A stretch of DNA of 64,000 nt, taken from contig MCFE01000476.1 of the NCBI GenBank assembly GCA_002104905.1, positions 1 through 64,000 on the forward strand. The letters run 5' to 3'. Numbering within the stretch: position 1 is the first letter of the stretch; each line of letters opens with the position of its first letter. This document shows positions 12,401 through 45,092 of the stretch, piece after piece. The notes beneath the pieces are model-generated. The model was not told the DNA's origin and made no database searches. It was given only the letters and a program-made list of their open reading frames with translations. Source of the stretch: Basidiobolus meristosporus CBS 931.73 (taxonomy: Eukaryota; Fungi; Basidiobolomycota). Made by a program: the position numbers and the translations under genes.

Positions 12401-15400
12401 TTAATTAGATTTTTCATTTCTTCTCCTGGCTGCATCTTTGTAGTAAGAAATTTTTGTCTCAGATACATTTTCCTAGCAGCTGCACATGATTGGTAGTTGT
12501 CATCTAGTGCCTTCCAGGCATTCTTTGCCATTTTTGCTCTTGAGCATTGAATTAGCAACTTGCCATTAACGTTAAGGCAAATGCAGTTAAAGGCACTTTG
12601 TTCTTTCTTCTAGTACTTTAAGGCTTCCTCTGCCACATTTTTAGGAGGGCATTCTTCTCCCATGACAATATCTCAAAGGCCTCTTTCTTGTAGCAGCATC
12701 TTCATCTTCACCTTCCACACCTGGTAGTTGTATCCATCCAACTTTTCAGCAGAGGGAAAAATTCCGGTAATAACAGTAGTAGACATTGCAGACAGTGACA
12801 GCCCAGAGCTTGTAACCTGTTGTTACAATCTTGGAGATATTGGAAGTGATTGGGAGGACAAGTAGATAATGTGGTATTCACTTACTGATTTCTTGAATGT
12901 AAAAGTAGAGTTTGTACTTTTACATGGTCTTGGTATAGCAAACATGTAGAACAGGATAAGGCAGGTTCCAAGAGCATGTGTACAAAGTTTGGGGCTGTTT
13001 TGACAACTTTAAGAATTTTCATGTTTGGGGTACCTGGTATTTTGGTGAAAATATTTTAAGTTAATCCCAACAGGGAATTTGATCAGTATTCTCAAGAGTT
13101 TGTAGGTAATGATCTAAGTGACTAAGTAAGGTGAATATTTAGGTGGAATTACAAATTTTTACAACAACAGCAATCTGTTTTGCAACTACTGCAAAAGTAA
13201 ATGACACATATCAGACTGGTATATTAAGCAGAGAGATAATCAGCAAGAGAAGCCTGAATATGGAAATGCTGTAACAAAAGAAAATAGACTATTCATATCT
13301 GCACTAAATATGACCACAAACAAGGATTTTCAGATGTGGTACATTGACTCTGGAGCATCTCAACACTTTACACACTAAAAAGAACTTTTTACCCATTACC
13401 AAGAAATTCCGGTTAAGAAGGTTCTAATGGGTGACAACAGCTCACCTGATGCAGTGAGAGAAGGAACAATCCAAGTAAACCTTAGAAGCAATGAAGGAGC
13501 CCATACACTGACCATTAAAGAAGTACTCCATGTACCAGAAATAGCTAAGAACATACTATCTGTAGGCAAGGCCACAGCAGAAGGACTCAGTTTCAGCTCT
13601 GACAATTTTGGATGCAAGATCACTGATCAAAATGGTGCTCCTATTGCTTTGGGTGTCAGAGATCAGACTCTTTATAAGTTGACTTATATTCCATCAAGTT
13701 TGGAAGCCAATATAAGTAACTTGAATGAATAAACACCAATGCTTTGGCACAGGAGATTTGGATATATCAATTTTGAATATTTGGGCAAAATGATCAAAGA
13801 TCAGCTAGTTTCCAGAGTAATAACTGATCCCCCAGCTAATTTGGAGCACTGTGAAGCCTGCAAATATGGGGAGCAAGCCAGACAACTGCTCAAGAGCTCT
13901 GGGTAATTCAAAACTAAAAAAAAAATTAGATTCAACTCACTCAGATCTGCAGGGACCTATGCAAAACTTATCCTTAGGCAGGATGAAGTATTTAATCACT
14001 TTTATTGATGATTATACAAGATATGCATTAGCCAACTTCATGGAGAGAAAGGAAGAAGCTCAGTCTAAGCTCAGGGAGTGTAAAGTCATAGAAGAGAGAG
14101 AAGCAGGTGAAGAAATCTAGAAAATATACTATGACAAAGGTGAAGAATATGCCTCAAACTCTTCAGCCACCTCTGCAAAATTCATGGGATAAAGTAAGAG
14201 ACTACTGTATCATACTCCCCATACCAAGGTGGAGTAACAGAGTGTGCAAAGAGATCAATAATTGATATGGCAAGATCTATGATCTGTGTTCAAAAATTAT
14301 CCCAAAATCTTTGGGCAGAGTCAGTTGCCACAGCTGTATTCCTTAAAAATAGGAGCTATAACAGAATACTTTGTGATTCTACTCCATTTGAAGTGTAGTA
14401 TGGATACAGATCAAGTGCAGTACATCTAGGAATATTTGGGCGTACAGCATATGACAAGAAACTGCCTGGAAATCAGTCAGAATTTGAGCCAAAAAGTGAA
14501 AAATAGATATGTTGGGGCTACTGCAATGAGAGTAAAGCATACAGCCTCCACAATACCAAAGCAAAGAAGCTAATCAAGTCCAGAGATATGTTGTTTGATG
14601 AAAATTCAAACTCTCACATAAAACAACATCAGATGATGACAAAAATTGGATCTCAAGTCCAGCAATGGTGAGGGTTCAATCAGAGCAAAACAATGGAAAT
14701 TCTTTCACTCCAGAGGGCTCTGTAGCTGTGGTTCAGCCTAAATCAGTGCCCAGGAGTATCCCAGAAGTGATTGTTCTAGTATCAAATGCCTGGAGATCCA
14801 ACTGGACAAAAAATAGCCTAGATTACAATATTAGTGAGGGTACAAACTTAGCCTATGCCTATTCAGTCCATATTGATGAGCACCAGACTGCAAAAGATGC
14901 CCCAAACAGCCTTGAGACAAAGTTTTGGCAATCTTCAATGACTGAGGAATTTCAGACTCTGCTGGAAAATCAAACTTGGGACTTAGTCAAATTACCAATC
15001 AACCAAAAATCAGTTGGATGCAGATGGTCTTTAAGACAAAACACAAGGCTGATAATACAATTGTAAGATACACAGCAAGACTTGTGGCCAAAGGATACTC
15101 CCAAACAAAAGGACTTGACCATACTGAGACCTTTGCACCAGTTGCCAAGTTCAATTCCATCAGATTAATGTTTGCTATTGCAGCTTAATATAAGTTTTAT
15201 ATATATATCAAATGGATGTATATTCATGATATACTAAAAAAGTACTAAATCAACAACTGTAAACCAACAGCTACCCAAATGGAGACAAATCTTAACTTGA
15301 TCAAAACTCAATCAAGTCAAGAGAGCTTGGTGCCATCCAAAAGCCCTGACTTTCCTTATCAATCTATGGTTTGCCATCTCATGTATATTACAATTGGAGC

Positions 15401-16770: not shown

Positions 16771-17839
16771 TGTGGTGGTGTATAGGTCTAAGGGAGAGAT
16801 ATGTCCAACACTTCTCAAGTATTTGTGTGTGGGGTGCTCACTGGGTGTGATAGCCTCTGGCAAAAGCTTGCTAGGAATACTTGGGTTCTGTCACTAATCT
16901 AATGTGATGGGGAACAAAGCCACAAACTTCTCAAGGGAAAACTATTGAGCTACAATCCCCAATTGAGTTGGCGTCTTAACAAAAGTATGTGCTGGGTTCA
17001 GTGTCCTTTGAGTAGACAATGTGCTAAAGCTTCCAAAGTCCAAACAGTTGTAGACTCCACCAGCAGGGACTAGATAAAATGCAGCTGTGGTCAATAGTTA
17101 CAAAGACAGAAAAGTATCTTTGACTGTACAAGAACAAACTTGGGAAAGAATCAAATATATTGAAAGATACCTACCCCAAGTATTGCTCATAATTAGTGCC
17201 TCTAAGGTCAGTTGGCTGTCAGCGTGGTTTCCTGGGAGTGTCCTGTAGTCTGGGGTTGGAAGTTCAGGTAGCAGCAGGTAGCAATGATCACACTAAGCAA
17301 CAAGTTGGTATATTGATAAAAGGGATGATGATTTATTGCTGAGGGATAACCTCCTTTATATACTTTTCTTACTGACAAAGTGATTACTAATCATAGTGTT
17401 CCAGAAGGTTCTGGATATCAATAGAGATCTTAATGACACCAGAATGACCTAAGAATGTTCTAAGTATGTGCCGGAAGGTTCCAAGAGGCACAGCACATCC
17501 AACCAATCAGGAATCAGTATTATGAAACCTGTGCAACATAGGGATAGCATATATGGTATGAAAGTGGTAGGGACGGTGCCATGGACTGGTCATGTGTCAC
17601 AGGTACTGGCGCAGGTACTTGCCTAATATAGAAACACTTATAGCTAGTAATCTAACCTAGAGTGACGGATAACTTATGCAATAAGGTAAGCAGCTATGAT
17701 AGTCAGCCAGCTTATGCAATAGTACTGATCAAGTAAGACAAATGGGATAAAACTAAAATAAGGGTAGTAGAGAAATAGGGAAGTAGAAAATATAAGAATG
17801 AGCACATCTGTCAGTGGGTGTCACTGTGACCCCACTACA
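16771..17839. repeat. LTR-X solo LTR (1069 bp), TSD ACAG/ATGG (ancestral ACGG)
   Basis: TGTGGTGG...CCACTACA termini; the empty paralogous site at 21562-21565 reads ACGG. Confidence 0.88.
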
Positions 17840-18921
17840 ATGGCATTGAATCAAAGCAGTCTTGTCCATGGGGCAAATAGTCCAAGGCTAAGCAGAATGG
17901 GCTTGACTTGTTGCATGACCATTATCCTTGATTCAAGCAAGCAAACAGATTTTAGGCCAGCATTGGTATTATAAGAAGGTTTCTTAAGAATAGCAGATAT
18001 TATCAAAGGTAGAAGAACAAGGGTGCCAAGGCTAAAAGCCTGCAGCTTCCCAAAGAGCTTGTCACAAGCAGGGCTAAAAGCTCCAAACAAGTGGCAATGA
18101 AACTACAGGAAGCCAGAACAGGCCAGTAATAGACAGGCAGGCAGAAACAGATGCACCAGTGCAGCATTTATCAAGGAGAAAACATAGTTCAATACAAGTA
18201 GTACTCAGTAACAGTAGCAATGAGGGACTTGACAGTGGTAAATACCCACGGCTTTCTCAGGAGCCTGTCACAAGCAAGGTTGATAGCTCCAAGCAAGCTG
18301 CAAAGAAATGTCAGGTTGATAGAGGAGTGCTGACAAGGAACAAGCAGGCAAAAATGGATGCACCAGTGCAGCATCCATCAATGCAAAAACAGAGTACAAT
18401 GCTAGAAGCACTTTGTGAAAGTAGCAGTGAAAGACTTGACAGTCATAACCCTACAAAAATAATTTGGTCCCACAGGTGGATCCAATCCGGATCATCCATC
18501 CAGATCCCATTTAGAGACCATCATAATAACAGCAGCTTGGAATTAGTGACCCTCCCAACAATCTAATAATAAGATCATGATGGTGTTTTGCAAATTTTAC
18601 AGCCAAATAAAGGGATAAAACTTGACAATTTTTAATTGGTGCTGTGACAATATTTGCATGGTATTGTTGCAGTCTTTCAGCGCTCTATTACTATTTTAAG
18701 TGGATCTAGTTGGCCAGGACTTCCAATTGCCTTATATGGCAAGAAACTTGATGGCAATTTGATGGCCTCACAGCTAGACTCTGATGGCATTTTTTGGCAG
18801 TATGATGGCCTACTGCTGGTTTTGTATAATGCCACTGTACCACTTTACCATATGATATTTCCTTTTTCTACCTCCCCTTGTGCAATTCATATATTCCACT
18901 GTAGAATCACCTTTCTTTACA

Positions 18922-21975: not shown

Positions 21976-22709
21976 AGACTTGTTCCGTTGGATAGTGCCA
22001 CATTGAGCCATGAGTGCCAAACAATGCCATAGTGTGCCAGAGAGGTCAAGTGAGCCTATACTTGGCCACAGAGTGTGAAACATAGCTCTGCATCTTCATG
22101 TAAAGCAACCCCTGTGTTTCACCCATTGCGCAGGAGAAAATCCATTTTTTGACCTTTTTTTGTGGATCAATGTAGCTCAGGATGTGTAAGAGCACAGGAG
22201 AACTGAAGATATGCATCTGGTACTCAATACCCATGGCACTCTGAATCTAGCTCCTGTAGCTTGTATCATGTCACAAAAATGAATGGCACTATCTTGGTCC
22301 ACTGGTACTATCTGGCACTATATTTAAATATTAGCCCTAAAGTAAGATCTATACAAAGCACTTAGAGTGCCAGATAGTACCAGTGGACCAAGATAGTGCC
22401 ATTCATTTTTGTGACATGATACAAGCTACAGGAGCTAGATTCAGAGTGCCATGGGTATTGAGTACCAGATGCATATCTTCAATCTGCTTGTGCTCTAACA
22501 CATCCTGCACAACATTGATCCAAAAAAAAAGGTCCAAAAATGGATTTTCTCCAACACAATGGGTGAAACACAGGGGCTGCTTTGCATGAAGATGCGGAGC
22601 TATGTTTCACACTCTGTGGCCAGGTAGAGGCTCACTTGACCTCTCTGACACACTATGGCATCATTTGGCACTCATGGCTCAATGTGGCCCTATCCAACAG
22701 AACAAGTCT
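21976..22709. mobile_element. Fold-back MITE copy 1 (734 bp, about 347-bp inverted arms, 40-bp spacer), TSD ATT/AAT
   Basis: AGACTTGTTCCGTTGG...CCAACAGAACAAGTCT; the empty site near 41785-41805 supports a 3-bp duplication. Confidence 0.93.
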
Positions 22710-24136
22710 AATAATGTGGACTCCTCTGGCACTCAGTCAAGTAAGCAATTGAGAACCTCTGTGGAGCCACAAGCTGACCATTATGCTCAGGCAGATGAAA
22801 ATGTAGCAAACGCAGTACCCTCAGTGGAAGATCAGCAAGTGGCCATGATATCATCACCACCACCCATATTAGCAAGTATGTTGTCAGCTCATACCAAAGC
22901 ATTTATGTAGCAATTAGGTGCAGTGGCTGATAGTATAGATGCAATGGCCCAGGCAAATCAGGAAGTAGTCCAGAAACAGTATGAGTGGAAAATATTTGTA
23001 GAGCAATCAATATCCCAGGTAGAGAAAGCAGTGTCATTGCTGCAAAGAAGGAACTCAAGTAGCTCAATGACATAGCCAAGAATTGAGCCATTTCCCAATG
23101 TAACAGCAGAGGAACACTGTACAGTTGTTGAAGCACAACAACAGTGCCCAAAGATAAAGCCCACAGAAAAGCCTATCACTGTGTGGGAGGGAGACAATGT
23201 GGTACTTATACCAAAGCCTAAAAATCAAAAGACATTGAAGATCTGTTAAGCTGTTGAGTGCAATAATGAAGAATGGGCTAATATACAAGAGGCCATCAGA
23301 AGTCTAGCATGCCATCACCATACAGCTGGCATACCATGGGACCATCAGCAACTCAAGGCCATGCAGAATGCACTTGAATTGTTCCATGAGCATTAGACTT
23401 GTTCCATCGTACCATGCCAGGGCGCGCGGCGTGATCCGCGGTTGCAAAGAACAATCAGGCGCGATATTATAGCTACCAGAAGGCAGGATTGTTCTGGGAC
23501 AATTTCGCACTATGCGGGACAATCTTGCACACTATGGCACAATCTGACACAATGAGGTTGGCGTGGATGATTGCGCCAACTTGTAATGTTTGCATCACGT
23601 GCGCAATCGGATACCGCTATAATGGCAGGTAAAATCCGGTATTTGGATATGTTTCTTTAATGTAAATGGAAATAAATGTGTATCACACTATAAACTACAC
23701 TAATACTTACCATTTTGGTTACCCTCACTCCAATTGGACAGTATCTCAGTGGTTAATTGGTCCAAAAGTATCCTGAAGCTGGCAGCCCCCAATTGGCTCA
23801 TTGACTACTGAAAAGCTACCTGATTTGCCATCAAATATCCCATTTTGCCCATTGAACAAGTAAATCCCTGATCCTAGTGATTGGGCAAGGTGTCATAGCT
23901 AGCACGCAAGCAATTGTGTAGGTGCAAAACAGATCCAATAGCTGCACTAGTATTACAGATGACTTATATATATGCAGGGTGTTTATTTATAGGGGTTCTG
24001 TCTCAAATGTGAGACGACCTTGATATTACTTATATCAAAAATTTGATGATCTCTGATTTGCAATGGCTTGATTTGGATTGCAAAAAAAAAGGGTTGTTGG
24101 GATCATTACAAATGTGAGCGATTTAAAGCAATCGCA

Positions 24137-25384
24137 TCATCTTCTCCTGGGTTTTTTTCTCACAGGGATTACTACTGAAGCATTTGGTAGTGACTCACTT
24201 TGCACACCTATACTACTTCCTGGCTGACTATCATCTTGGCTACTTGTGTATTTGTAGTCAGTATTTTGCCTCCTAGTTAATGAGTGCGATGCTGCAGCTT
24301 GGCCACGCTGAATTGCTCTGACTGAACCAACTGAACCGGCCTGTTGTGCCACGCGCTGACGCGTTCTTTTACTTGCCAAGGGCTCCGGTGGTTGAGGCAC
24401 TTCATGTTGGTCATCATCAGTCAGTTCACCAGAAGTAACTTGCTGATGGTCAGGTGAAACGGCACGTGCAGGCGTGCCTTGATGTGTTGAGATGGCCCTT
24501 GGCTGAGTTTGATGTGATGCCGCATGTTGATGTGACTCGGTCCGCTCCAATGGACTTGTGTCTAAATGAGCAGTTTGGTGAGTTCTCGTAGTTTTGCTCT
24601 GAAGTGTGCGTGTTGACCCAACGCGCATTGACTCGATGCGGGGCGTTCTGGTAAAGGGTGTTGGTGTGGTCTGGACTGACGTTTGCCGGCACGCTGTAGT
24701 TGCAAGAGATGGTAGGGAATCCAGCAAGGCGTGCTGGTGTGATCTGGACAATGTTGCTCACGGTCTGTATTCTTCCTCCTGAAGCTCTCCATCTGATTCC
24801 TCAAGGTATTCACTTACCCTCTGTCTGATACTTTGGAGCTGTTGCCTGGATGATTCCTGTGTATATTGCTCTTGGAAGCCACTTAGCTCTACTAATATAT
24901 CACGTAGTACATTAGTCATTTGAGGCAAAAACTCATTCAAAATCTCTTTGGTTCCCAAAGTTGAGGCACAAACAGACGTGTCCAGCCCATACTGTGCAAA
25001 TTGCGCGCAAAATCGTTCCCGTGCGGCTTCTTTGTCAAATCCTCTCACTCTCAGCTCATTCTTGATTTCAATACTTGTCTTGTTATATATCTTTTTACAT
25101 ACATTGGCTGGCATCTTGATGTAGAACTCATGCCACAGCTTTCTACTCAAATTCTTCCATCTTTGTTGACTCTCTGAGGTATCTAGTTCTGCTAGATTAA
25201 TCAGTAGTGCCCAAATATCTGTATGAAGGCTCATCATAGACACTTGGGCCATACTAAAATCATTTGGCAAGAACTTGAACGGATCCAACATTGACTTTTC
25301 CGTTCCGGACCGCGTTTGTGAGCTGGGGGATGGGTTTTGTCTGGGTTGTACTAAAGATGAGTTGAGGCTTGGTATGGGGACCAT
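24137..25384 (-). CDS. ORF2 of the PHIS element (about 415 aa; one in-frame TGA at 24758-24760); helical N-half, disordered C-half, basic NLS-like tail
   Basis: ORFs 24758-25384 and 24137-24751 are in the same frame, separated only by TGA-GCA-ACA; ends PVRKKPRRR; tail conserved in the decayed copy at 58505-58930. Confidence 0.75.
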
Positions 25385-25715
25385 AGCAACAGATTTGGAT
25401 ACTTATACAGCAGTATATTGGCATCAACCTGGTCTTTTATGAAATATATATGAAAACTAAAGTGATTGTTGAATTTTCCATATATTATGCATGATGCATC
25501 TTGGATCGCGTTGATATGGATCAGATCACATCAATTGCAGATTTCCTATTTGATTATAGACCTATGATTAAAGCATCAATAAAAGTACCAAGGCATTGTT
25601 TGCGGATGATTTTTGCAACATAATGATGGGATACATGGCAATTGATGGAGATTTAACCATAATGTGTTAAAAATCAGATAAATAACGCAGATTGCGCCGA
25701 ATTGATTCAAACCGC

Positions 25716-26794
25716 TGTGGTGGTGTATAAGTCCAAAAGGGCAAAATACAGCCAACACTTCTCAAGTGTGAATGTGTGTGGGGTGTTCACTGGGTGCGAT
25801 AACCTCTGGCAAAAGCTTGCTAGGAATACTGGGTCTTTTATCTAATCTAAGTGATGGGGGATAAAGCCTCAAGCTTGTCAAGGGAAAACTATTGAACTAC
25901 AATCCCCAACTTAGTTGGCGTCTTAACAAAAGTTTATAATGGCTTCGACGTCCTTTGAGATGACAATGTACTAAAGCTTCCAAAGTCAAAACAACTGTAA
26001 ACTCCACCAACAGGGACTTGATAAGAATGCAGCTTTGACCAATAGTTACAAAGACTGAAAAGTATCTTTGCCTGTACAAGAACAAACTTGGGAAAACAAA
26101 CAAATATAATAAAATATACCTACTCTGAGTATTCCTCACGAGTGGTGCCTCCAAGGTCAGTTGGCTGTCAGCGCGGTTTCCTGGGAGTGTCGTCAGATCT
26201 GAGTCAGAAAATAGTGGTAATAGGTAGCGGTGATCTCGCTAATCAATAAGTCGGAATATTGGAAGAGGGATGATTTATTTTAAGGGATAGCCTCCCTTAT
26301 ATACTTTTTTGCTGCTCAATTTCTTGCTAGAAAATACTTTCCGGAAGTTTCCAGAAGGTAGTAGACAACCAATCATGTCTTTGTGTACTAAAAATAGCGC
26401 AAATTCTTGGCGGATTGTTCCATGAGACATAGTAGTACCTAGCCAATCAGGTAGTGGTAACATGAAACCTCTGTGTCATGTGGTTGCCTCTTATGGTAGT
26501 GAGATGGGGGATTATGAAACCAAGATGGTCACGTGACATGGGCACTGTTGGGGTACTTGCCTTATAAGGTAACTATCTTATCTTGGCATCTCGGCAAGGA
26601 ATAAGAATAGCTTGTGCAATGGGTTAATAGGGACAAATAGCTTGTCAGGTTGCATAGTAATAATCACATAGACAAAAATAGGAAATATTGCAAATTTGGG
26701 ATGATAATAATATAGGCGGGGTAATCCTTTTTAGGGAAGTGAATGCATAAGAATGAGCACATCTGCCTGTGGGTGTCACTGTGACCCCACTACA
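25716..26794. repeat. LTR-X solo LTR (1079 bp), TSD CCGC
   Basis: TG...CA termini; CCGC at 25712-25715 and 26795-26798. Confidence 0.92.
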
Positions 26795-26826
26795 CCGCCT
26801 CCATACAATCATCCATCAATTTTAAT

Positions 26827-27711
26827 ATGACTTACTCATCTGAATGGTCTTTTCTCATCAATCCCATCACTACCACTGGATTTCCTTTTGACACACTGGA
26901 GGAGATCTATTCCAAGTACTGTGGACCATCAACCCCAATCTACTCAAGGAGATCCCTTGTTAAGCTTCTCTGCTATTACAAGAACTATTGCCCTACAAGG
27001 TTTCATCCCACCATCCATGGCAACAAAAGTCCTAGAAGCTTTCATTCCCAGCTGACAGCAATGGAGAACCACCTTGCAGAGGGTATGAATGACTTAGAGC
27101 AAGCTTGGAATACTAGGTTCAGAAGCTCCAATAGACTTCCATATCCCAGAGTGTTCAGCAACAGGTTCCATATCAGGAGTATTTTGGATACCTTCCCAGT
27201 GAGGATTAACAGACCTTCTAGAGGGCAGAGGCACTTTTATTCTGGCAAGTACAAGGCACACTGTGTGAAGTTTCAAGCACTGTCTGACATTGAGGGTAAC
27301 ATCATCTGGTTTAGTGGGCCATTTGCTGGAAGTAGGCATGACAAAGCACTCTGGGTAGAGAATCATCCTGAATTCAGTAGAGGGGAGAAATGTATGGCAG
27401 ACTTGGCCTATATAGGAGAGAATTGTCAGAGATTAGGATGTATTACAGCTTATAGGAAGCCAAGGAATGGTGTGCTTAGCAGGAAGCAGAAGCTCTACAA
27501 TGAGATATTTGATCATTTCAGAGTAAGGGTAGAGCACACATTTGGATATCTGAAGAGATTCAGCATATTGGCAGGAAAATACAGAGGAAAGTCATATATA
27601 GGTGAAAACAGCAGAATAGGTAAAATAGTTAAGATACTTATTAATGCACAGTATGTTAATACAAGAAGACATCCACTGAGAGAAATGTGTCTGGAGCATT
27701 ATGAAGAGTAA
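26827..27711 (+). CDS. Intact DDE transposase, PIF/Harbinger-IS5-like (DDE_Tnp_4 type), 294 aa
   Basis: ILDTFPVRINRP, YSGKYKAHCVKFQ, SGPFAGSRHD, ADLAYIG, KPRNGVLS..Q.LYN, RVRVEHTFGYLKRFSIL..KYR. Confidence 0.93.
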   Translation: MTYSSEWSFLINPITTTGFPFDTLEEIYSKYCGPSTPIYSRRSLVKLLCYYKNYCPTRFHPTIHGNKSPRSFHSQLTAMENHLAEGMNDLEQAWNTRFRSSNRLPYPRVFSNRFHIRSILDTFPVRINRPSRGQRHFYSGKYKAHCVKFQALSDIEGNIIWFSGPFAGSRHDKALWVENHPEFSRGEKCMADLAYIGENCQRLGCITAYRKPRNGVLSRKQKLYNEIFDHFRVRVEHTFGYLKRFSILAGKYRGKSYIGENSRIGKIVKILINAQYVNTRRHPLREMCLEHYEE

Positions 27712-29629
27712 ATAAAGCAAGGAAAGCACTATTCTGAGCAACATAAGTAAGATTGAGTAAAATTACCAGTAACTGTATCATACCACTGGCATCATGGTAG
27801 AAACTATAGTGCCAGATAGTGCTGTAGAGTGCCAGATCAATCCGGCACTATAAACAGGCAGGCACTATGTGGCACTATCCAACGGAACAAGTCTATTATC
27901 CTGGATTCCAACAGGCAAATGGATTTTGGGCCAGCATTGGCATACTAAGAAAGTATCTTGAGAATAGCAGAAATTATCAAAGGCAGCAGAACAAGGGTGC
28001 CATGGCTAAAAACCAGCAGCTTCCTCAAGAGCCTGTTACAAGCAGGGCCAAGCAGGCAGTCATTGAAGCACCAGCACAATATTTATCAAGGAAAAAGTGT
28101 AGTACCACTCAAGAAGCCCCCAGTCAAAGTAGCAGTGAAGGATCTGGCAGTGATAAAAACCAGCTGCTGTTACTGGAGCCTGTCACAACTATGGTTGAGA
28201 GCTGAAAACAAGCTGAAAAGAAACACAGGTTGCCAGAAGAGTACCAGCAAGGGACAAGCAGGCCAAAACAGATGCATCAGAGCAGAATTTATTGAGGAGA
28301 AAATGTAGTTCTTTACAAGAAGCATTCAGACAAAGTAGCAGTGAAAGACCTGACAGTGATAAAGGAAAAGGTAAAGGGAAAAATGTCTACCCAAGCCTGA
28401 GACAGGGAGGCATGCAGAAGAAACTGCAGTTCTCCGCAATTAACACCACAAGCCAGGAACAGACTGAATCCCATCATAGCCAAGAAGAATTACCGACAAG
28501 AAAACAGCTGTTGGAAGCACAGCCAGTTCAGCTTCACTCCAGCAAGGTAGAAGAGTTTGATGAAAAAAGCAATTTGTCTACCACAGCATCCACATCCTCC
28601 ACAGCCTCCATTGTTGACAGAGTGGGGATCCCACTGCCAGACAAGGCTACAATGTCAAGAGCTCAAAAGACTATCACAATGCCTTCAGTGGAGCTTTGGA
28701 ACATTAATAGGCACACCAAGAGGTTGCAGCACTTCTTCAGGAGCAGTGCTCAAGAAAATGCACTGGAATATTGCAAGGATTTATTGCAAAGACTAGCAGA
28801 TAAGACGCTAGACCTTGCAGTGCTGGCTGAAGACCAGGATGTGTGGGAACCAGTGAATGAACAGTGGCATAAAGCCGTTGGGCTCCTGCCAAAGTCATGC
28901 AACCAGAGCATTACAACAGAAATACTTATTGAGTGGTGGATTTTAATGAAGTTACTTGCTGAGTGTGGGGTTGGGCTTAATGTTAGTGTAGGGTATAGAG
29001 ACTTGTATAGGTCTATACAATTGGCAATTGAGGTACAACTGAAGTTTCAATGGAAATAAATCAATTTGTATGCATGAAAAGTAAGAGAAATGGTTGAGGC
29101 AGGAACTAAGGAGTGTGAAAAAGAGGCAATAGCCAATTAACTCACACAAACATAGGAGGCAATAGAGTGTCTGGGATCAGAAAGTGAGCAAACTGACTGG
29201 GAACCAATCAAAAGGCACTTATACATTGTTGTGATGAAAAATTTTGACAAAGTCTTTTGTGAAATCTGGGGTGCAATTATTTTTCATTGGTCTCTGGACA
29301 GTGTCCTGACAAGATCAGTATCTCTTAGTCATGGGACATTAACTTTGTGAAGGCCTTTTGATGGGATCATCTCAATAGTTTTTCATAGGGATAATGGTAA
29401 AGGTAAACAGAAAAGGTCTTCCAAAGTCAGAGACAGGGAGCCTGAGGAAAAAGCAGCAGTTCTCAGCAGTTAATGCTGTCATCCCAGAACAGGCTGAGTC
29501 CCATCATAGCCCAGAAGAATTACCAACAAGACATTAGTTGTTTTCTCAAGTGTTGGAGGTGCAGCCAGTGGAACTGGGCTCCAGTGAGGTAGATGAGTTT
29601 GCAGAGAAAATCAATTTATCTGCCATCAC

Positions 29630-30348: not shown

Positions 30349-31300
30349 GTTCTATCCCCCTTTATATGCTCTGCAGTCTGATAAATGTTGGTCATGAATA
30401 ACTAGCCTTGTCTTATTGATCAGCACCCAAGTCCTTTCCTGGTCCTCCCTAGCCCATCTCTACTCTTCTGCCTTAGATCCGCTGATAACACTATCCCCAC
30501 ACCTTCCACTGTAGGCAGAGTGGAGATCACACTGACGGACAAAGCAACAACATCAAGCACTCAAAGTCTATCACAATGTATAGGAACCAGTGAGTAAGCA
30601 GTGGCATAAAGCCACAGGGCTCCTACAGAAGTCATGGAAAACGGGACATTGCAGCATAAGTTCCTATTGAATAAAGATTTTTATGGAGTTGCTTTTTGAG
30701 TGTGGGGCTGGGCCTAGTGTTAGTGGTGAGTATAGGGACTTGCATAAGTCAATATAATTGGCAATTAGAGTAAAACTGAAGTTTCAACACAAATAAAGCA
30801 ACTTGTATGTATGCAAATTAAGAGAATTGGTTGAGTCAGGAAGTAAGGAGTATGAAAATGAGCCATTAGCTAATCATTGGACACAAGTGTAGAAGCTGAT
30901 TGGGTGTACATGATCAAAAAGTGAGAGAATTGGTGGGGACCATTCAGATGCCACTGTTGTATTGTTGTGGTGATGAGTTTTGACTCAGTTTTTTGCAAAT
31001 CTGGGGGGCAATTACTTGTCAACAGTGCTTGCATAGTGTCCTGATAGGATCAATACCTTGTAGTCACAGGACTTTATTCATGTGATGATCTTTTGATGGT
31101 GTGGTGAGGCATAAGTCCAAGGGAAAGATACATCCAACACTTCTCAAGTGTTTTGTGTGTGGGGTGTTCACTGGGTGCAAGAACCACTGGCAACAGCTTG
31201 TTGGGAATACTTGGGTTCTCTTTCTACTCAAACATGGAGGGGAATAAAGTCAAAAGCTTGTCAAGGGAAAGCTATTGAGCTACAATCCCCAACTCAGCGG

Positions 31301-32370
31301 TGTGATGGTGTATAAGTCCAAGGGAGAGATATGTCCAACACTTCTCAAGTGTTTTGTGTGTGGGGTGCTCACTGGGTGCAATAACCTCTGGCAAAAGCTT
31401 GCTAGGAATACTTGGGTTCTGTCTCTAATCTAATGTGAACAGGAATAAAGCCATAAGCTTGTCAAGGGACAACTATTGAGCTACAATCCCCAACTTAGTT
31501 GGCGTCTTAACAAAAGTATGTGCTGGGTTCAGCGTCCTTTGAGATGACAATGTACTAAAGCTTCCAAAGTCAAAACAACTGTAAACTCCACCAGCAGGGA
31601 CTTGATAAGAATGCAGCTGTGGTCAATAGTTACAAAGAAAGAAAAGTATCTTTGCCTGTACAAGAACAAACTTGTGAAAGAATCAAATATAATAAATTAT
31701 ACCTACTCTGAGTATTCCTCACCAGTAGTGCCTCCAAGGTCAGTTGGCTGTCAGTGCGGTTTCCTGGGAGTGTCCTGTGGTCTGGGGTTGGAAGTTCAGG
31801 TAGCAGCAGGTAGCAGTGATCACACTAATCAACAAGTTGGTATATTGATAAAAGGGATGATGATTTATTGTAGAGGGACAGCCTCCCTTATATACTTTTC
31901 TCACTGGCTAAGTGATTACTAATCATGGTGTTCCAGAAGGTTCCGGATATCAATAGAAATCTTATTGACATCAGAATGACCTAAGAATTTTCTAAGTAGG
32001 TGCCGGAAGGTTCCAAGAGGCACAGCACATCCAACCAATCAGGAATCAGTATTCTGAAACCTGCGTAACATAAGGATACCATATATGGTATGGAAATGGT
32101 AGGGATGGTGACACGGGTTGGTCATGTGCCGCGGGTACTGGCGCTGGAACTTGCCTAATATAGAAGCACTTATAGCTAGTAATCTTACATAAAGTGAGGG
32201 GTAACTTATGCAATAAGGTAAGCAGGTGTGATAGTCAACTGGCTTATGGGATAGTACTGATTGGGTAAGACAAATGGGATAAAACTAAAATAAGTGTAGT
32301 AGAGATATGGAAAGTAGAAAATAAGGGAATGAGCACATCTGTCAGTGGGTGTCACTGTCATCCCACTACA
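31301..32370. repeat. LTR-X solo LTR nested in LTR-X, TSD GCGG/GCAG
   Basis: TGTGATGG...CCACTACA; host LTR sequence resumes at 32375. Confidence 0.9.
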
Positions 32371-32742: not shown

Positions 32743-33476
32743 AGACTTGTTCTGTTGGATAGGGCCACATTGAGCCATGAGTGCCAAATGATGCCATAGT
32801 GTGCCAGAGAGGTCAAGTGAGCCTCTACCTGGCCACAGAGTGTGAAACATAGCTCCGCATCTTCATGCCAAGCAGCCCCTGTGTTTCACCCATTGTGTTG
32901 GAGAAAATCCATTTTTGGACCTTTTTTTTTGGATCAATGTTGTGCAGGATGTGTTAGAGCAAAAGCAGATTGAAGATATGCATCTGGTACTCAATACCCA
33001 TGGCACTCTGAATCTAGCTCCTGTAGCTTGTATCATGTCACAAAAATGAATGGCACTATCTTGGTCCACTGGTACTATCTGGCACTATAAGTGCTTTGTA
33101 TAGATCTTACTTTAGGGCTAATATTTAAATATAGTGCCAGATAGTACCAGTGGACCAAGATAGTGCCATTCATTTTTGTGACATGATACAAGCTACAGGA
33201 GCTAGATTCAGAGTGCCATGGGTATTGAGTACCAGATGCATATCTTCAGCTCTCCTGTGCTCTTACACATCCTGAGCTACATTGATCCACAAAAAAAGGT
33301 CAAAAAATGGATTTTCTCCTGCGCAATGGGTGAAACACAGGGGTTGCTTTACATGAAGATGCAGAGCTATGTTTCACACTCTGTGGCCAAGTATAGGCTC
33401 ACTTGACCTCTCTGGCACACTATGGCATTGTTTGGCACTCATGGCTCAATGTGGCACTATCCAACGGAACAAGTCT
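32743..33476. mobile_element. Fold-back MITE copy 2 (734 bp), TSD ATT
   Basis: ATT at 32740-32742 and 33477-33479; arms 32743-33089 and 33130-33476. Confidence 0.95.
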
Positions 33477-34191: not shown

Positions 34192-34924
34192 AGACTTGTT
34201 CCGTTGGAGAGTGCCACATTGAGCCATGAGTGCCAAATGATGCCATAGTGTGCCAGAGAGGTCAAGTGAGCCTCTACCTGGCCACAGAGTGTGAAACATA
34301 GCTCCGCATCTTCATGCCAAGCAGCCCCTGTGTTTCACCCATTGTGTTGGAGAAAATCCATTTTTGGACCTTTTTTTTTGGATCAATGTTGTGCAGGATG
34401 TGTTAGAGCACAAGCAGATTGAAGATATGCATCTGGTACTCAATACCCATGGCACTCTGAATCTAGCTCCTGTAGCTTGTATCATGTCACAAAAATGAAT
34501 GGCACTATCTTGGTCCACTGGTACTATCTGGCACTATAAGTGCTTTGTATAGATCTTACTTTAGGGCTAATATTTAAATATAGTGCCAGATAGTACCAGT
34601 GGACCAAGATAGTGCCATTCATTTTTGTGACATGATACAAGCTACAGGAGCTAGATTCAGAGTGCCATGGGTATTGAGTACCAGATGCATATCTTCAGTT
34701 CTCCTGTGCTCTTACACATCCTGAGCTACATTGCTCCACAAAAAAGGTCAAAAAATGGATTTTCTCCTGTGCAATGGGTGAAACACAGGGGTTGCTTTAC
34801 ATGAAGATGCAGAGCTATGTTTCACACTCTGTGGCCAAGTATAGGCTCACTTGACCTCTCTGGCACACTATGGCATTGTTTGGCACTTATGGCTCAATGT
34901 GGCACTATCCAACGGAACAAGTCT
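34192..34924. mobile_element. Fold-back MITE copy 3 (733 bp), TSD AGT
   Basis: AGT at 34189-34191 and 34925-34927; arms 34192-34538 and 34579-34924. Confidence 0.95.
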
Positions 34925-35049
34925 AGTTATGTTCAGGATAGGAAAATCACTTAGGGTGATAGATTTGCCATCAGAGTAAAATATGCTAAGTTATAAAAGT
35001 TTTGATACTCTCTGGGCTGCCCTGCATCTCCAATACAGATCAAAAATGG

Positions 35050-36620
35050 AAGCATCACCAACAATGGTGTATGGTTTCCAGGAGTTGTTTTTGGCATCCT
35101 AACCTTTACACTTGGCAAAATAGAGGCAATTTGGCTCTTCTCCATACTTATACTTTTACATGGTCTGGGCACAAGAGGTCCATAGAATAGGTCTGAGAGG
35201 GTCTTAAGAATATGGGTGCAAAGTTTGGGGTTGTTTGGACAGCTTATCAAAATTTTATGTTAGGGGCACCTAATATTTTGGTGAAAGTATTCCAACCAAA
35301 TCACAACAAGGAATTTGATCAGTATTCTCTAAGATTTTAGGTAATGATCTAAGTGACCTTGCTAGGCAGATATTTAGGTGGAATTACAAATTTCTACTAC
35401 ACTCCCACTCAACTAAATGTTCAAACTGACTAATACTAATTTTGACCCAAGATATTCAAATCTGTCTCTAGCTAATGGTTTGGTGAATATGTCTGCAATC
35501 ACTTCATCCAAAGAACAGTAAGCTAAGTTAGCTTTGTTACTCTTTAAAGCATCACATCTGAAATTGTGTCTAATATCTATATGCTTAGTTCTAGCATGAA
35601 AAGTTAGATTTCTATTTAATTTTATTAATCCTTGATTATCTTGAAATAAAGTTACAGGTGTTTTTGACATAGGCCTGAATCTTGAAAAAAGTTTCCTTAA
35701 CCACATTGCTTTTTCATAGCTTCACAGGTTGCCATATGTCTTTGTGCTAGAAAGGGCTACACTTGGTTGCTTTATTGAATACCATGAAATTCCTCCATTA
35801 CAGTAAAGAAAGGTGAATTCTGTGTTGGACATTCTGTCTTCCAAATTTTGTCCCAACTTGCACCAGAGTATCCAGCAAGATCTTGTTCTAAATGCTTATA
35901 GCTGTACCTAAAGCAGATATCAGCAGTTCCCTTTAGGTATCTAAATATCCACTTAACTGCTGTAATAAGATCAGATCCATAGTTCTGATTATGCTGGCTG
36001 GCAACTCCCACTAAATATGAGATATCTTGATGTGGTCAAAGCATGCTTTGTATCAGACTACCAGCCATAGATTGATAAGGGTAGTTGGGGCTTTTGAATG
36101 GCACCAAGCTCTCTTGAATTGGTAGAGCTTTGACCAAGTTAAGGTTTGTCTCCAATGGGTTAGCTGCTGGTTTACAGTCCTTTGTTTGGTACATGTTAAG
36201 TATATCTTGAATATAACTGCATTTGCTTAGGGTGATAATATGGGTACTTTGATCTATGGAGAACTTTATCCCCAAGTGGTAACTGAGTTCTCCTAGATCA
36301 GACATCTTGAATTCTTTAGATAGACTGGATTTAATCACTTCTAATGTTTCTAGGTTATTGCCAGCTATAATAATATCATTTGCATATAGAGCTACTAGAG
36401 CTGGATTTGCTCTATATGGCTTATTGTATATACTATAGTCAGTATTACTCCTTTTGAAGCTCAAAGATTTGAACTAAGAGTCTATCTTGCAATTCTAGGC
36501 ACTTAGTTATTATTCAAGACTGCACAGATTTTTTCAGCTTGCAAACCAAAGAGGGTTATATTGGTCAAGAAACCAATTAGGCTCATCTAAATACATGCCA
36601 TCATCAAGTTATCCATCCAA
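35050..36620 (-). mobile_element. Decayed Copia-A 3' part (LTR to 35401, PPT, RH/RT fragments)
   Basis: CTCCCACTC PPT after the LTR; ORF fragments TKHIDIRHNF and LYANDIII. Confidence 0.85.
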
Positions 36621-36629
36621 TCTTTGACA

Positions 36630-38524
36630 CTATTGGAAGTTTTGTATGAAATCACCTGGAAATCAATCAAAACTTGAGCCTAAAAGTATAAAATGCATAT
36701 CTTTAGGCTACTGCAATGCAAGTATAGCACACAAAATCTATAAAAGGAAGCAAAGTGGTTGATGAGGTTGAAGTATATTCCTTTTGATGAAATTTCAAAA
36801 TTCTCACAAATGGAGACACTGAATAATGATTAAATCTGATAGCAAGTATATCAGTAGTCAGGATGAAATCAGGACAAAATAATGAGAGTTTTTCCCCTGC
36901 AGAGGACTCTGCAACTATGGTCTGCCTAAATCTGTACCCAGGAGTATCCTAAGAGTATGCATTCTAGTACCTGAAACCAGATGATAAAACCTAACCAGAA
37001 ATAGCCCAATTTACTATGTCAGTGTGGGTATAAGCTTAGCCTATGCCTATTCAGTTCATAGTGATGTGCTGCAGACTGTAAAAGAGGCTCTTAATAGCCC
37101 CAAGAAAAGGTTTGGAGATCTGCAACAACTAAGGAGTATCAGGCCCTGATGAAAAATCAGACATGCAACTTTTCAAACACCAATTGACCCAAAGTTAACT
37201 GAATGCAGATGGGTCTTAAAGACAAATGCAAGGCTGAGAGTATAACTAAAAGATACCAAGCAGGACTTAGGGTCAAAGAATACTCTCATACAAAAGTACT
37301 TGACTATATTGACACCTTTCACTGGGAGTTAAGTTGAATATTATCAGAGTAATACTTGCTATTGCAGCCAAATATCAGATTTTTATTCATTGAGTGGATG
37401 TAACACTGCATTTTTCAATGAAGAACTTGATGAGAATGTGTATATGGGCCTGCTGGATGGGCCTGCTGACTAAAATAACTACCATTTGGTCTGCAAGATT
37501 CAAAACACCAATGAGGTCTGATACAATCACAAGCCTAAACTTGCAAGAGAGAATCTTATTTGGAATTAATGAGTTACCATAAGAGTACTGCTGACCATAG
37601 TCTGTATTTTAAGCCAGATAGAGAAATTCAGTTCCATTAGCTGTACATATGGATGATTGTATTTTAGCCACCATTGAACTATAAATATTGAAAGAGACTA
37701 AACCAGTCTATCTGAGGAGTTCAAGATATCCAACAAAGGTGAGCTCATTTACTACTTAGGGATAAAGCTTTGCATAAAAAGAAGTGCCCAGACAAATACC
37801 CTAAACTAATCCAACTATATCCAAGAAATACTAAAGAAGAACCATATCAAAAACTTTAAAGCAGCTGCTACCCCAATGAAGACAATCCTTAACTTGGCCA
37901 AAACTCAACAGAATCAAGAGAGCTTGGTACTATTTGAAAGCCCAGAATACCCTTACCAGTCTATGGGCAGCAGCTTAAAGTTTGGGTTATGTCTAGATAT
38001 CTCATATTTGGTGGGAGTTGTCAGCAAGCATAAGCAGAGCTATATATTCAATGCCATTGCAATAGTTAAGCGGATTTTTTGATACTAATAGGAACTACTA
38101 ACTTCTACTTAAAGCACTCCGTGGGGATTCAAAATAAGGTCTTGTTGGATACTCTGATGCTGATCAGGGACAGATTTAACAGACAGATGATGCACCACAG
38201 AATACACATTTCTCTACTGTACAGGAGTATTTTGATTTAATTTGCAAAAGCAGCTGACCATAGCACTTTCTCCCATAGAGGCAGAGTATAGGGCACCTGT
38301 GAGACAATGTGATTAAGAAAGCTCTTTAAAGTCCTATGTTCATGCCAAAAAATGCCTGTTACTTTATTTCAAGATAATCAAGGATGTACACAATCAGGCA
38401 GAAATATAACATCTCATGTTTGAACTAAGCATATATATTTTAGACCTCATTTCATATGTAGAGCAAAAGAAAGCAGCCTAGATAATATAGCTTACTGATA
38501 TACAGCTGAAATAATTGCAGACGT
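36630..38524 (+). mobile_element. Heavily decayed Copia-A INT-tail/RT/RH fragment
   Basis: Nucleotide similarity to the reverse complement of 2900-4800. Confidence 0.75.
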
Positions 38525-38890
38525 TGGAGTGGGGTCACAGTGACACCCACTGATAGATGTGCTCATTCCCATATTTTCTACTTCCCAATTTTCTACTACC
38601 TTAATATTACTTTTATCTCATTTGACTTACTTGAGCAGTACTATCCCATACACCAGCTGACTATCACACCTGCTTACCCTATTGCATAAGTTATCCCTCA
38701 CTTTATGTAAGATTATTTGATCTGAGTGCTTCTGTCCTAAGCAGGTGCCCATACCAGTACTTTTAACACATGACCAGAGTACTTTACCATCCCTGCCATT
38801 TACATACCATATATGGTATCCCTGTGTCACACAGGCTTCAGAATATTGATCCTTGATTGGTTGGGTGTGCTGTACTCTTGGAACAGCTGT
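38525..38890. repeat. Truncated LTR-X (reverse orientation), flanked by ACGT
   Basis: TGGAGTGGGGTCACAGTGACACCCAC terminus. Confidence 0.8.
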
Positions 38891-38899
38891 TTTCTTGTT

Positions 38900-40615
38900 T
38901 GTAATTCTTCTTGGCTATAATGGGATTCAGTCTGTTCTGGGCTTATGGTGTTTATTGCCAAGAACTGCAGACTTTTTATTATGCTGCCTTGTCACTGGCT
39001 TGGGTAGACTTTTCCCCTTTACCTTTTCCTTTATCACTGCCAGGTCTTTCATTGCTACATTGTCTGAGTGCTTCTTGTATTGAACTACATTTTCTCCTTG
39101 ATAAATGCTGCTCCAATGCATCTGTTTTAGCCTGCTTGTTCCTTGCTGGCACTCTTCTGGCTACCCAACATTTTTTTAGAATATGAATGCCCAGAGACAT
39201 TGACTAATACTGATGGGACTCTGGGGTAAGGCTCAGTGAGTGTGCCAAGATATAGATATAGTAAAGAACAGACTAAAACATCACATGAGGATATGTCAAG
39301 GGTCACCTAGTCATGTGACTAGGTCATGTGACATGCTATTGCTATATATGGTATTGAGCTACATACATTCCAAAGGGAAGCTTCCATAGGATACTCCATT
39401 GTGTATTGATGACTTGGAGCGTTCAAGAAGTAGCTGGAATGTATTAGAACTCTCTAGAAGGAACTGGGATTTCTTCACCAACATGATTTGGCTGGATCAT
39501 GAAAGGTCAAGGATGTCAAGTGAGCATGAGAGACTTCTTAAACAGAGCTATCACTCTGTGTGCCATTTTCAGAAGGCTGAGGTGAGCCTAAAGGCATCAC
39601 AAGCTCACCTGACTCAGCCTGTGAGAGGTGACAAGTATGGTTGGGTGCTGTAATAGAAGTATGAGGTTTCAACAGAAATAAAGCAATTTGCTGGTATGAA
39701 AAGTAGGAGAATTGGTTGATTTATTAAGTAAGGAGTGTGACAATGAGCTAATAGGCAATATATGTACAAAAATGTAGGAGGTGATAGAGTGTCTGGGATC
39801 AGAAAGTGAGAAAATTGGCAGAGAACTAATCAAATGCCACCTAGGTATTAATGTAATCAAAACTCTTGGCCAGGTTTTTTGTGAAATCTGGGGTACAATT
39901 CTTTCTAAGTGATATTTGCAAGGTGACCTAACAGCATCAACACCTCTTAGTCACTGGACTTAAGCTTTGTAATGGCCTTTTGACAGGATCACCAGGATTA
40001 TTTTTCATTTGGTGTGGTACTTTATAGCTTCAGAATATTTGTTGGTCAGCATGAGTTTCAGACACAGTATTGCTGGAAAATATCTAGAGTGTTATCAAAA
40101 TTTTTCTCCTGTGGTGGTAGATACTTGTAAGGTTGCACACCTTAAAATAGTCACATTTTCAAATGTGAATGCCATGCAGCTATGACCACATGCAGCTATC
40201 AGACTAGTCTCTGGTTCCTGTGTAGCCAGTCACATGATGGCACCACATTTATCACAAGGACATGGCAAGTTGCATCTTGGAATAATTTTGGCAATAAGTA
40301 GTAGTAAGTCCTCAAAACCCTCATTACTTGTATTGGTGGAAGTACATCATTTCTCTAGCCACAGCATCATATTATTAACCAGTATATGTATTACTGGGCT
40401 CACTTGGCTCCACAAAGTGTCCTTGACATTTTTTCTATGGGTGTTATCTCATTGAATATTGGAATTTTGCCAGTCTCATGCAGGGTGCATGGTGAGGGGA
40501 GATAGGCCCAATAGATCAGTAAGCCTTCTTCTTCAGAGCTATCACTCCACTGGCAAGATTCAGAAGGCTGAGGTGAGCCAAAGACTGCCACAAGCTCACC
40601 AGCATTGGTTTGCAT
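38900..40615. mobile_element. Scrambled CMC fragments (ORF-Y antisense piece, right-end tail, tnp2 N-terminal piece)
   Basis: Similarity to 28200-28400, 29060-29390 and 20870-21340. Confidence 0.6.
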
Positions 40616-41620
40616 TGTGGTGGTATATAAGTCCAAGGGAGAGATACATCCAACACTTCTCAGGTTTTTTGTGTGTGGGGTGTCCACTGGATGCAATATC
40701 CTCTGGCAAAAGCTTGTTAGGAATACTTGGGTTATGACTCTACTTTAATGTGAAGGGGAATAAAGCCACAAGCTTGTCAAGGAAAAACTATTGAGCTACA
40801 ATCCCCAACTTAGTTGGCATCTTTACAAAAGTATGTGCTGGGTGCAGCATGCTTTGAGATGAAAGTGTACTAAAGCTTTCAAGGTCAGAGCAACTGTAAA
40901 CCTCACCAGCAGGGACTTGATTAAAATGCAGCTGTTGTCAACAGCTACAAAGACAGAGAGCTATCTTTCCCTGCACAAGAACAAACTTGGGAAAGAATAA
41001 AATATAATAAAAGATTCCAACTCTGAGTATTCCTCACAAATGGTGTCTCCAAGGTTGGAGGGCCATCAGTGTGGTTTCTTGGGAGTGTCCTGTGGTCTGG
41101 GACTGGAAGTTTGGGTAGCCTCTTACATGAGCAAAATTGATCTATAATTAACAAAGTGGGGATGTTGCTTTGCTCCAGTAGATTGGATATATGTCAAACA
41201 CTAATCAAGTGTTTTGTGTGTGGTGTGTTTACTGCGTGCAATAACCGCTGGCAAAAGCTTGCTAGGCATACCTGGGTTCTGACTCTGCTCAAATGTGAAG
41301 GGGAACAAAGCCACAAGCGTGTCAAGGGAAGACTATTGAGCCACAATCCCAAAATTAGTTAGCATCTTTACAAAAGTATTTTCAGGGTACCGTGTCTTTT
41401 GATATGACAATGTACTGAAGCTTCCAAAGGCAAAACAACTCTAAACTTCACCAGCAGGGACTTGATAACAATGCAGCTGCTGTCAATAGTTACAAAGGCA
41501 GAGAAGTAACTTGACCTGTACAAAAACAAACTTGGGAATGAATAAATTATGATCAAAGATACAAACTATGAGTGTTCCTTGCAAGTAGCACCTCCAAGGT
41601 TAGTTGGCTATTGGTGTGGT
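40616..41620. repeat. Two tandem truncated LTR-X pieces (second is the variant subfamily)
   Basis: TGTGGTGGTATATAAG start; junction near 41118 to the variant end also seen at 45000-45092. Confidence 0.7.
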
Positions 41621-41659
41621 ATCTTGGGAGTGTTTATGTTGCCCAGAAATAAAGCAAAG

Positions 41660-43977: not shown

Positions 43978-45092
43978 TGCAGAGAAGTCACAATGATACC
44001 CACTGACAGATGTGCTAATTCCCATATTTTATACTTCCCTATTTTTCTACTACCCTTATTTTAGTATTATCCCATTTGTCCTACTTGATCAGTACTATCC
44101 CATAAGCTGGTTGACTCTCATCACTGCTTACCTTATGGCATACATTATCCCTTACTTTATGTAAGATTACTTAATGTAAGTGCTTCTATATTAGGCAGGT
44201 ACCTGTGCTAGTACCTATGACACATGACCCAACTATGTCACCATCACTATCTTTTTCGCACCATATATGGTATCCCTTTGTTACACAGGTTTCAGGAAGC
44301 TAATTCCTGGTTAGTTGGCTATGTTGTGCCTGTTAGAACATTCCAGCATCTACTCAGAATGTTCTTAGCTCATTTTGATGTCATTAAGATTGCTATTTGA
44401 CTACCAGAGCCTTGTGGAACACCATGATTAGTAAGCACTTTGCCAGTGACCAAAGTATACAAGGGAGGTAATCCCTTAACAATTAATTATCATTGCTTTT
44501 ATCCTTATACCAACTTCTTGATTAGTGTAATCACTGCTACCAGCTGCTACCTGAACTTCAAATCCCAGACCTCAGGTCATTCCTAGGAAACTGAGCTGGC
44601 AGCCAACTGACCTTGGAGGCACTAGTTGTGAGGAATACTCATAATAGGCATCTTTGTATTTTATTCTTTCTCAAGTTTGTTCATGTACAGGTCAGGTTGC
44701 TTTTCTGCCTTTGTAACTATTGACAGCTGCTGCATTGTTATCAAGTCCCTGCTGGTGAAGTTTAGAGTTGTTTTGACTTTGGAAGCTTCAGTACATTGTC
44801 ATCTCAAAAGACACTGTACCCTGCAAATACTTTTGTTAAGATGCTAACTAAGTTTGAGATTGTGGTTCAATTGTCTTCCCTTGACACACTGGTGGCTTTA
44901 TTCCCCTTCACATTAGAGAAGAGCCAGAACCTAGGTATTCCTAACAAGCTTTTGCCGGTAATTATTGCACCCAGTAAACACACCACACATAAAACACTTG
45001 ATTAGTGTTTGACATATATCCAATATACTGGAGCAAAGCTACATCCCCACTTTGTTAATTATTGATTAATTTTGCTCAGGTAAGAGGCAGCA
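43978..45092. repeat. LTR-X variant (reverse orientation)
   Basis: Homology to LTR-X over about 1 kb; different terminal segment of about 110 bp. Confidence 0.7.

Follow-up and report, generated by a model that had tools for sequence, protein, structure and literature searches.

The 64-kb stretch of DNA analysed here (hereafter, the window) contains a transposon in which a transposase gene without a single CpG dinucleotide lies beside a CpG-rich partner gene, ORF2. An earlier, sequence-only reading took the transposase to be the anomaly and proposed that long-term selection had made it resistant to the deamination of methylated CpG, while ORF2 either escapes methylation, is protected or was acquired more recently. 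The locus thus raises the question of which part of the element departs from its surroundings, and how the contrast between its two genes arose.

We identified the element as a 4,500-bp PIF/Harbinger transposon (23395-27894), delimited by terminal inverted repeats (TIRs), an ATT target-site duplication (TSD) and paralogous empty sites. The left TIR (23395-23419, plus strand) opens with AGACTTGTTCC and forms an inverted repeat with the right TIR (27870-27894), the termini matching perfectly over 11 nt. The left ATT (23392-23394) matches the ATT at the right end (27895-27897), and a single uninterrupted ATT is present at paralogous empty sites near 60221, 62252 and 17918. Because these three sites confirm it, ATT is a true target-site duplication. 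The insertion target was another repeat, which continues on the right side of the element (27895-29400) and has paralogs in the window (60131-61953, 62185-62887, 17921-18448 and 38878-40008). This recipient repeat contains a 255-aa ORF (28292-29059) without a Pfam match, of which degenerate paralogs occur at other places in the window.

Within the element, ORF2 (minus strand) and the transposase (plus strand) are divergently transcribed. The left subterminus (23405-23640) is CpG-dense and contains GCACTAT-type motifs. ORF2 follows, and then a native intergenic stretch that is a putative promoter region (25385-25715; CpG observed/expected ratio (o/e) of about 0.7). A nested solo LTR (repeat R; 25716-26794, plus strand) with TG...CA ends, flanked by the TSD CCGC at 25712-25715 and 26795-26798, separates this region from the transposase ORF (26827-27711, plus strand; 294 aa, DDE_Tnp_4) and ends about 30 nt upstream of its ATG. 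The right subterminal region (27712-27894, plus strand) again contains repeated ATAGTGC/GCACTAT motifs, and 20 of the 27 occurrences of these motifs in the window fall in the ends of the element and in its miniature derivatives (MITEs).

The assignment to PIF/Harbinger relies on a DDE domain (Pfam PF13359, DDE_Tnp_4, E=3.3e-23), on TIRs with a 3-bp TSD, and on three 734-bp MITEs with the same termini. The element also shares with the superfamily a complete DDE triad (D121, D192 and E236, invariant in the alignment with relatives), a separately transcribed second gene and repeated subterminal motifs. The palindromic MITEs (21976-22709, 32743-33476 and 34192-34924) each consist of two 351-nt inverted arms and are flanked by TSDs of ATT/AAT, ATT and AGT; as the copies are 98.5-99.3% identical to one another, the family has been recently mobile. 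Several features set the element apart. The TWA (TAA/TTA) target preference usual in the superfamily was not found among the TSDs (ATT, ATT, AGT and ATT/AAT), four sites being a weak test of it. The transposase, at 294 aa, is short and is encoded without introns, and its nearest database relatives are metagenome sequences only 35-49% identical to it. The partner protein lacks a detectable Myb/SANT domain and has no relatives beyond one sister family, described below. We conclude that the element represents a new family of Harbinger transposons, one whose MITEs have been active recently and whose partner protein is an orphan.

The interval assigned to ORF2 by the sequence-only reading (24137-25384) does contain the 38 CpG counted there (o/e 0.56), but it is not a single ORF. 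An in-frame TGA (24758-24760, minus strand) splits it into a proximal piece encoding 208 aa of the partner protein (24761-25384, minus strand; 13 CpG, o/e 0.46) and a distal open frame of about 204-206 codons that is rich in S, T, Q and H (24137-24757, minus strand; 25 CpG, o/e 0.64, GC 0.51). The TGA overlaps a GTGAG donor-like motif, for which several in-frame acceptors are possible, and is either a nonsense mutation or intronic. With this TGA and the nested solo LTR, the window copy may itself be inactive. When the two pieces were used separately, unjoined, as queries, a word search and a full HMMER search of 1.84 billion representatives returned nothing, no Pfam domain (Myb/SANT included) matched even at E<=10, and a sequence search of the PDB gave nothing of note. 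A single-sequence AlphaFold model of the proximal piece is predicted to be helical, at low confidence (pLDDT 48.7). A 'Myb-like' label for ORF2 is unsupported; apart from the sister-family ORF, no relatives or domains are detectable.

The counts reported earlier for the transposase are exact. The ORF contains no CpG, against 38.4 expected from base composition, and its 28 arginines are encoded by 16 AGA and 12 AGG codons and no CGN. The all-AGR arginines had been presented as a second observation; since each CGN codon includes a CpG, they are the same fact as the absence of CpG. The CpG-free state had also been held not to be simple post-insertion decay, and the intact DDE triad agrees with this. 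The supporting argument allowed CGN codons to decay only to stop, Cys, Trp, His or Gln, and so left out the synonymous single steps CGA to AGA and CGG to AGG.

Against its surroundings, the absence of CpG from the transposase is ordinary. The window as a whole has a CpG o/e of 0.107 with TpG (1.32) and CpA (1.36) in excess, and at the density found outside the element only about 2.7 CpG are expected per 885 nt. Windows of 885 nt with no CpG make up 13.8% of the total and 14.8% of those outside the element. The CpG-free run that includes the transposase (26797-27842, from about 30 nt 5' of the ATG to about 130 nt 3' of the stop) ranks only twelfth among the longest in the window, and the interval 34913-38071 has no CpG over 3.1 kb. 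Pooled, the Ty1/copia ORFs of the window use 110 AGR against 9 CGN codons, with CpG o/e from 0 to 0.26, and an open copia ORF on a related contig gives similar values (o/e 0.12; 22 AGR, 1 CGN). The transposase is therefore not the outlier, its CpG level being equal to that of the old junk and copia ORFs in the window. Among the outcomes that the earlier reading named as refuting it were host genes and transposon ORFs all equally CpG-free and AGR-biased, with an ORF2-like CpG content common; half of this picture is what the window shows, the baseline for the comparison being the 64-kb sequence and its copia ORFs.

The depletion acts on the dinucleotide and not on codon choice, because CpG across codon junctions is missing as well (0 in the transposase, against 12.4 expected by synonymous-codon permutation); codon preference is thereby ruled out as the cause. 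Protein constraint is ruled out also, because distant relatives are CpG-normal. In these metagenome sequences, at most 49% identical to the window protein, the transposase gene has a CpG o/e of roughly 0.6-1.2, and at the arginines that they have in common with the window protein they use 42 CGN and 7 AGR codons. The protein therefore tolerates CpG, and its arginines were recoded in the lineage of the window element. A plant-type CHG methylation signature is likewise ruled out, as CAG/CTG are not depleted (they are enriched 1.5-1.7). The CpG depletion of the window depends on context, with o/e of 0.03-0.04 for TCG/CGA, 0.10-0.11 for ACG/CGT and 0.15-0.18 for CCG/CGG/GCG/CGC.

What stands out in the 64 kb is the left 3.4 kb of the element, which has retained its CpG. 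The left 3,432 nt, of which about 1.08 kb is nested solo LTR and not Harbinger sequence, contain 85 CpG and the right 1,068 nt only 2 (Fisher p=2.9e-8), although GC content is alike in both halves and GpC is depleted in neither. The block at 23.4-26.8 kb has an o/e of 0.4-0.7, rising locally to 1.19, and 1-kb bins in the rest of the window stay at or below 0.25. The emphasis of the sequence-only reading is thus reversed: the transposase conforms to the genome norm, and the feature to note is the half with the partner gene and regulatory sequence, which has retained its CpG. By the same token, scans that flag CpG-free ORFs in such genomes will catch background, the informative signal being the places where CpG is retained.

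The CpG retention is graded. By the criteria of Gardiner-Garden and Frommer (a minimum of 200 bp in length, 0.5 in GC and 0.6 in CpG o/e), the 3.4-kb block as a whole falls below a CpG island, its segments having GC of 0.33-0.51 and o/e of 0.42-0.69. Island values are reached locally, in the left subterminus (23405-23640; 18 CpG, GC 0.51, o/e 1.19, the CpG density noted earlier being confirmed) and in the distal frame of ORF2 (24137-24757; GC 0.51, o/e 0.64). With an o/e of 0.46-0.65 and an excess of TpG and CpA, ORF2 has retained only part of its CpG and has thus itself decayed to some degree.

Such a block could be a local property of the chromosomal site, a host CpG island or a region of hypomethylation unrelated to the element, and it would fit this account that the nested solo LTR also retains more CpG (19) than its paralogs (0-11), which mostly have CA or TG at those positions. 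We nevertheless give this account only a very slender chance, because the left end of the element is exactly where the CpG-rich zone starts, with 2 CpG (o/e 0.04) in the adjoining kilobase of flank, and because the same architecture is found in sister-family contigs from other datasets.

An old truncated copy of the left end (57763-58942, plus strand; CpG o/e 0.07) reveals how these CpG behave in dead sequence. It is 82% identical to 23395-24175, the first 781 nt of the element, which contain 22 CpG; at the aligned positions (57763-58545) the dead copy has kept 1 of the 22. Among the lost sites, 12 are now CA, 5 TG and 1 TA. The CpG of the left end are thus ancestral and are decaying in dead copies. 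The truncated copy also carries a 350-nt insertion relative to the intact copy, and its homology ends inside the 3' end of ORF2. Youth by itself does not make sequence in this family CpG-rich: the young MITEs, which need no promoter, are CpG-poor, each with just 3 CpG (o/e 0.08-0.09), one of them in the TIR motif CCGTTGG.

Relatives of the element were identified on four contigs (L001, L085, L086 and L087) from four independent sequencing runs; being close copies, they amount to about two independent observations. The transposase of this sister family is 62% identical to that of the window, and its ORF has 0-1 CpG. Synonymous differences between the families are saturated (their proportion, pS, is 0.76-0.78), with a dN of 0.27; among the sister copies dN/dS is 0.08, and the transposase is under purifying selection. 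The CpG-free state is therefore old, being common to two families with saturated synonymous divergence, and lineage-specific, the distant relatives being CpG-normal. The right end is conserved between the window element and the sister family. L085, L086 and L087 encode an identical transposase protein, from which L001 differs at about 8 non-synonymous sites.

The sister family also has an ORF2. On L085, 407 nt separate the transposase from an upstream, divergently oriented ORF on the other strand, which runs to the contig edge. Its 86 residues, to which the sister-family evidence for ORF2 is confined, show 43% identity to the N-terminus of ORF2 (E=2e-20). This N-terminal segment has 11 CpG in 258 nt (o/e 0.79) and the 407-nt intergenic region has an o/e of 1.13, so that the 667 nt upstream of the CpG-free ORF contain 24 CpG (o/e 0.96). 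The contrast in composition is real and heritable.

These data bear directly on the proposal that ORF2 was acquired more recently. In its fullest form, ORF2 and the left half would have come recently from a CpG-rich source and been joined to an old resident transposase, which would explain the sharp composition boundary and the lack of ORF2 relatives outside the window and sister lineage. However, the sister family has a homologous, CpG-rich ORF2 in the same divergent position, and between the families that homolog has diverged further (43% identity) than the transposase (62%). Because the sister-family homolog is present and also CpG-rich, ORF2 is an old partner, neither a recent acquisition nor part of a recent chimera; a recent or chimeric origin is largely refuted by it, and we regard this account as barely credible.

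In both families the CpG-free zone extends from 16-31 nt before the ATG to 105-135 nt past the stop, with equivalent boundaries in L085 and L001. Since this is the span expected of a transcript, selection might act on RNA, the transposase mRNA avoiding CpG to escape a ZAP-type restriction factor that senses CpG in RNA. A CpG-rich ORF2 mRNA would be equally exposed to such a factor, however, and we consider the idea highly improbable.

Comparison of the sister copies extends the picture of CpG decay. Between L085 and L086, 1 of 885 ORF positions differs, against 19 of 294 upstream, and 8 of 12 upstream CpG are gone from L086. The CpG at L085 position 652 has survived in both L085 and L001, at a dS of 0.14 from each other, and L086 (now TG) and L087 (now CA), each only dS 0.005 from L085, have lost it in separate events. 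CpG is therefore highly unstable in certain copies but persists along the lineage that remains intact. As the upstream CpG decay in different directions among the sister copies, this dataset could be used for dating CpG decay.

The same comparison is relevant to selection. Selection at the level of the lineage could specifically have eliminated CpG from the transposase gene, so that its ORF would stay functional in copies that are silenced and methylated, a form of mutational robustness. Such robustness is visible in the L085/L086 contrast, and purging would explain why codon junctions lack CpG and why, in each of two diverged families, the CpG-free zone coincides with the limits of the ORF or transcript. 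When the families are pooled, a single CpG stands against about 5.4 expected at the density outside the element, a marginally low count. On the other side, the CpG content of the ORF is not demonstrably below that of neutral old DNA, where 14-15% of windows are at zero and 34913-38071 is empty. The copia ORFs are equally biased, and ORF2, which the element also needs, is left unpurged without explanation. We consider purging selection possible, though on balance unlikely. A passive equilibrium could also yield the absence of CpG from the window transposase and the 0-1 CpG of the sister-family ORF. That the CpG-free ORF is old thus stands from the earlier reading; that it was selected for resistance to deamination does not follow, as methylation equilibrium together with purifying selection gives the same picture. 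Selection specifically for deamination resistance is not needed, although the robustness that it would confer is real, as L085 and L086 attest.

The reading that we prefer, and to which we give about an even chance, is a two-part CpG architecture in which the transposase is at methylated equilibrium and the half with ORF2 and the regulatory sequence resembles a CpG island that is shielded in the germline. Under this scheme, the transposase transcription unit would long have been at the CpG-free equilibrium of germline-methylated, deamination-prone DNA, and purifying selection would have removed every copy in which a CGN codon had turned into stop, Cys, Trp, His or Gln, leaving only AGR arginines and CpG-free codon junctions. 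The left subterminus, ORF2 and the divergent promoter region would be unmethylated in the germline of competent copies, or their CpG would be otherwise maintained, for example by selection. Silencing of a copy would then be followed by fast decay of its left-half CpG. As a by-product, the transposase ORF would be immune to the main mutational process of the genome and could outlive the rest of the element. From the composition, its conservation in the sister family, the quick decay of CpG in dead copies and the purifying selection on the transposase, all described above, we infer the methylation states and the island-like protection that this architecture invokes. For ORF2, the earlier suggestion that it escapes methylation or is protected thus becomes the best remaining option, on inferential grounds, once recent acquisition is set aside.

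Several observations fit the two-part architecture poorly. An island over a bidirectional promoter should fade gradually on both sides, yet CpG vanishes in the last 30 nt or so before the transposase ATG, and ORF2 meanwhile keeps CpG over 1.2 kb, unlike a fading island. The partial CpG content of ORF2 and its TpG and CpA excess mean that any protection would be only partial, and the nested LTR and the TGA in ORF2 make the integrity of the window copy doubtful.

More active forms of protection may also be envisaged. Transposon proteins that counter silencing exist, VANC of VANDAL21 being one. HDP1 and HDP2 of Arabidopsis, derived from a Harbinger gene pair, have been described as anti-silencing factors (PMC5339849). 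By analogy, the ORF2 protein, or the transposase-ORF2 pair, might actively keep its own half of the element unmethylated, and the CpG retention across ORF2, the promoter and the left subterminus with its repeated GCACTAT-type motifs would suit such a role, as would the report of Harbinger-derived protein pairs in this function (PMC5339849). Like VANC and HDP1/HDP2, which are transposon-encoded or transposon-derived accessory proteins associated with hypomethylation of specific sequences, ORF2 could then be an accessory factor, a resemblance that offers a lead only. ORF2 differs from both in having no sequence similarity to either, nor any detectable similarity to known proteins or domains. Moreover, the right subterminus has the same motifs and is CpG-poor. 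As an argument purely from analogy, we judge this very unlikely. A broader version, a division of labour against a methylating host, would combine a CpG-purged, deamination-proof transposase with a self-protected CpG-island-like module serving as an on/off switch, possibly through binding of the orphan ORF2 protein to the GCACTAT-type motifs; this we hold to be doubtful and rather improbable.

In mammalian LINE-1 elements, a CpG-island promoter in the 5'UTR precedes CpG-poor ORFs. The two-part architecture preferred here appears to have its closest analogue in this pattern: in each, the regulatory part is CpG-rich in young copies and decays fast in old ones, coding sequence is CpG-poor, and the host is globally depleted in CpG. 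The difference is that LINE-1 is a retrotransposon with a single transcription unit, whereas the window element is a cut-and-paste transposon in which the division falls between two genes, one complete coding gene being in the CpG-rich part. Germline methylation and deamination have been reported as the cause of CpG depletion in transposable elements and host genomes (PMC12582260, PMC7431005), and the loss described in those sources resembles what we observe, with CpG becoming TpG or CpA in dead copies, an excess of TpG and CpA, and CpG kept only in island-like regions derived from transposons. The two sources describe genome-wide trends in sequenced vertebrates and other taxa, and not a conserved contrast between both genes of a single transposon family. 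Should differential germline methylation over the long term be what the split reflects, the element would be a compact natural case for the persistence of CpG-rich regulatory modules in a CpG-destroying genome, and would test neutral equilibrium against selection as the origin of 'deamination-proof' coding sequence.

The window is rich in other transposable elements. Scans for tRNA genes and Rfam families in the window gave no match. We take the sequence to come from a non-human eukaryote, a human origin being disfavoured by the open copia ORFs, by the intact Harbinger with its young MITEs and by the CpG o/e of 0.107. Several ORFs encode Ty1/copia gag, integrase and reverse transcriptase, with fragments at 2833-6936, 11986-12558, 46833-50685 and 63019-63990. 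One copia gag-integrase ORF is 86% identical to a protein of an ENA metagenome contig (L003). The named matches of the copia proteins, in plants, Klebsormidium and a fungus, are 22-30% identical, and one relative at 35% clusters with proteins of a jellyfish (Rhopilema). The nested solo LTR is one of at least five copies in the window (25716-26794, 16771-17839, 31098-32370, 40616-41633 and 43990-45020) of an LTR-like repeat that measures about 1.08 kb and has TG...CA ends. The copy near 31.1-31.5 kb includes a 200-bp tandem duplication.
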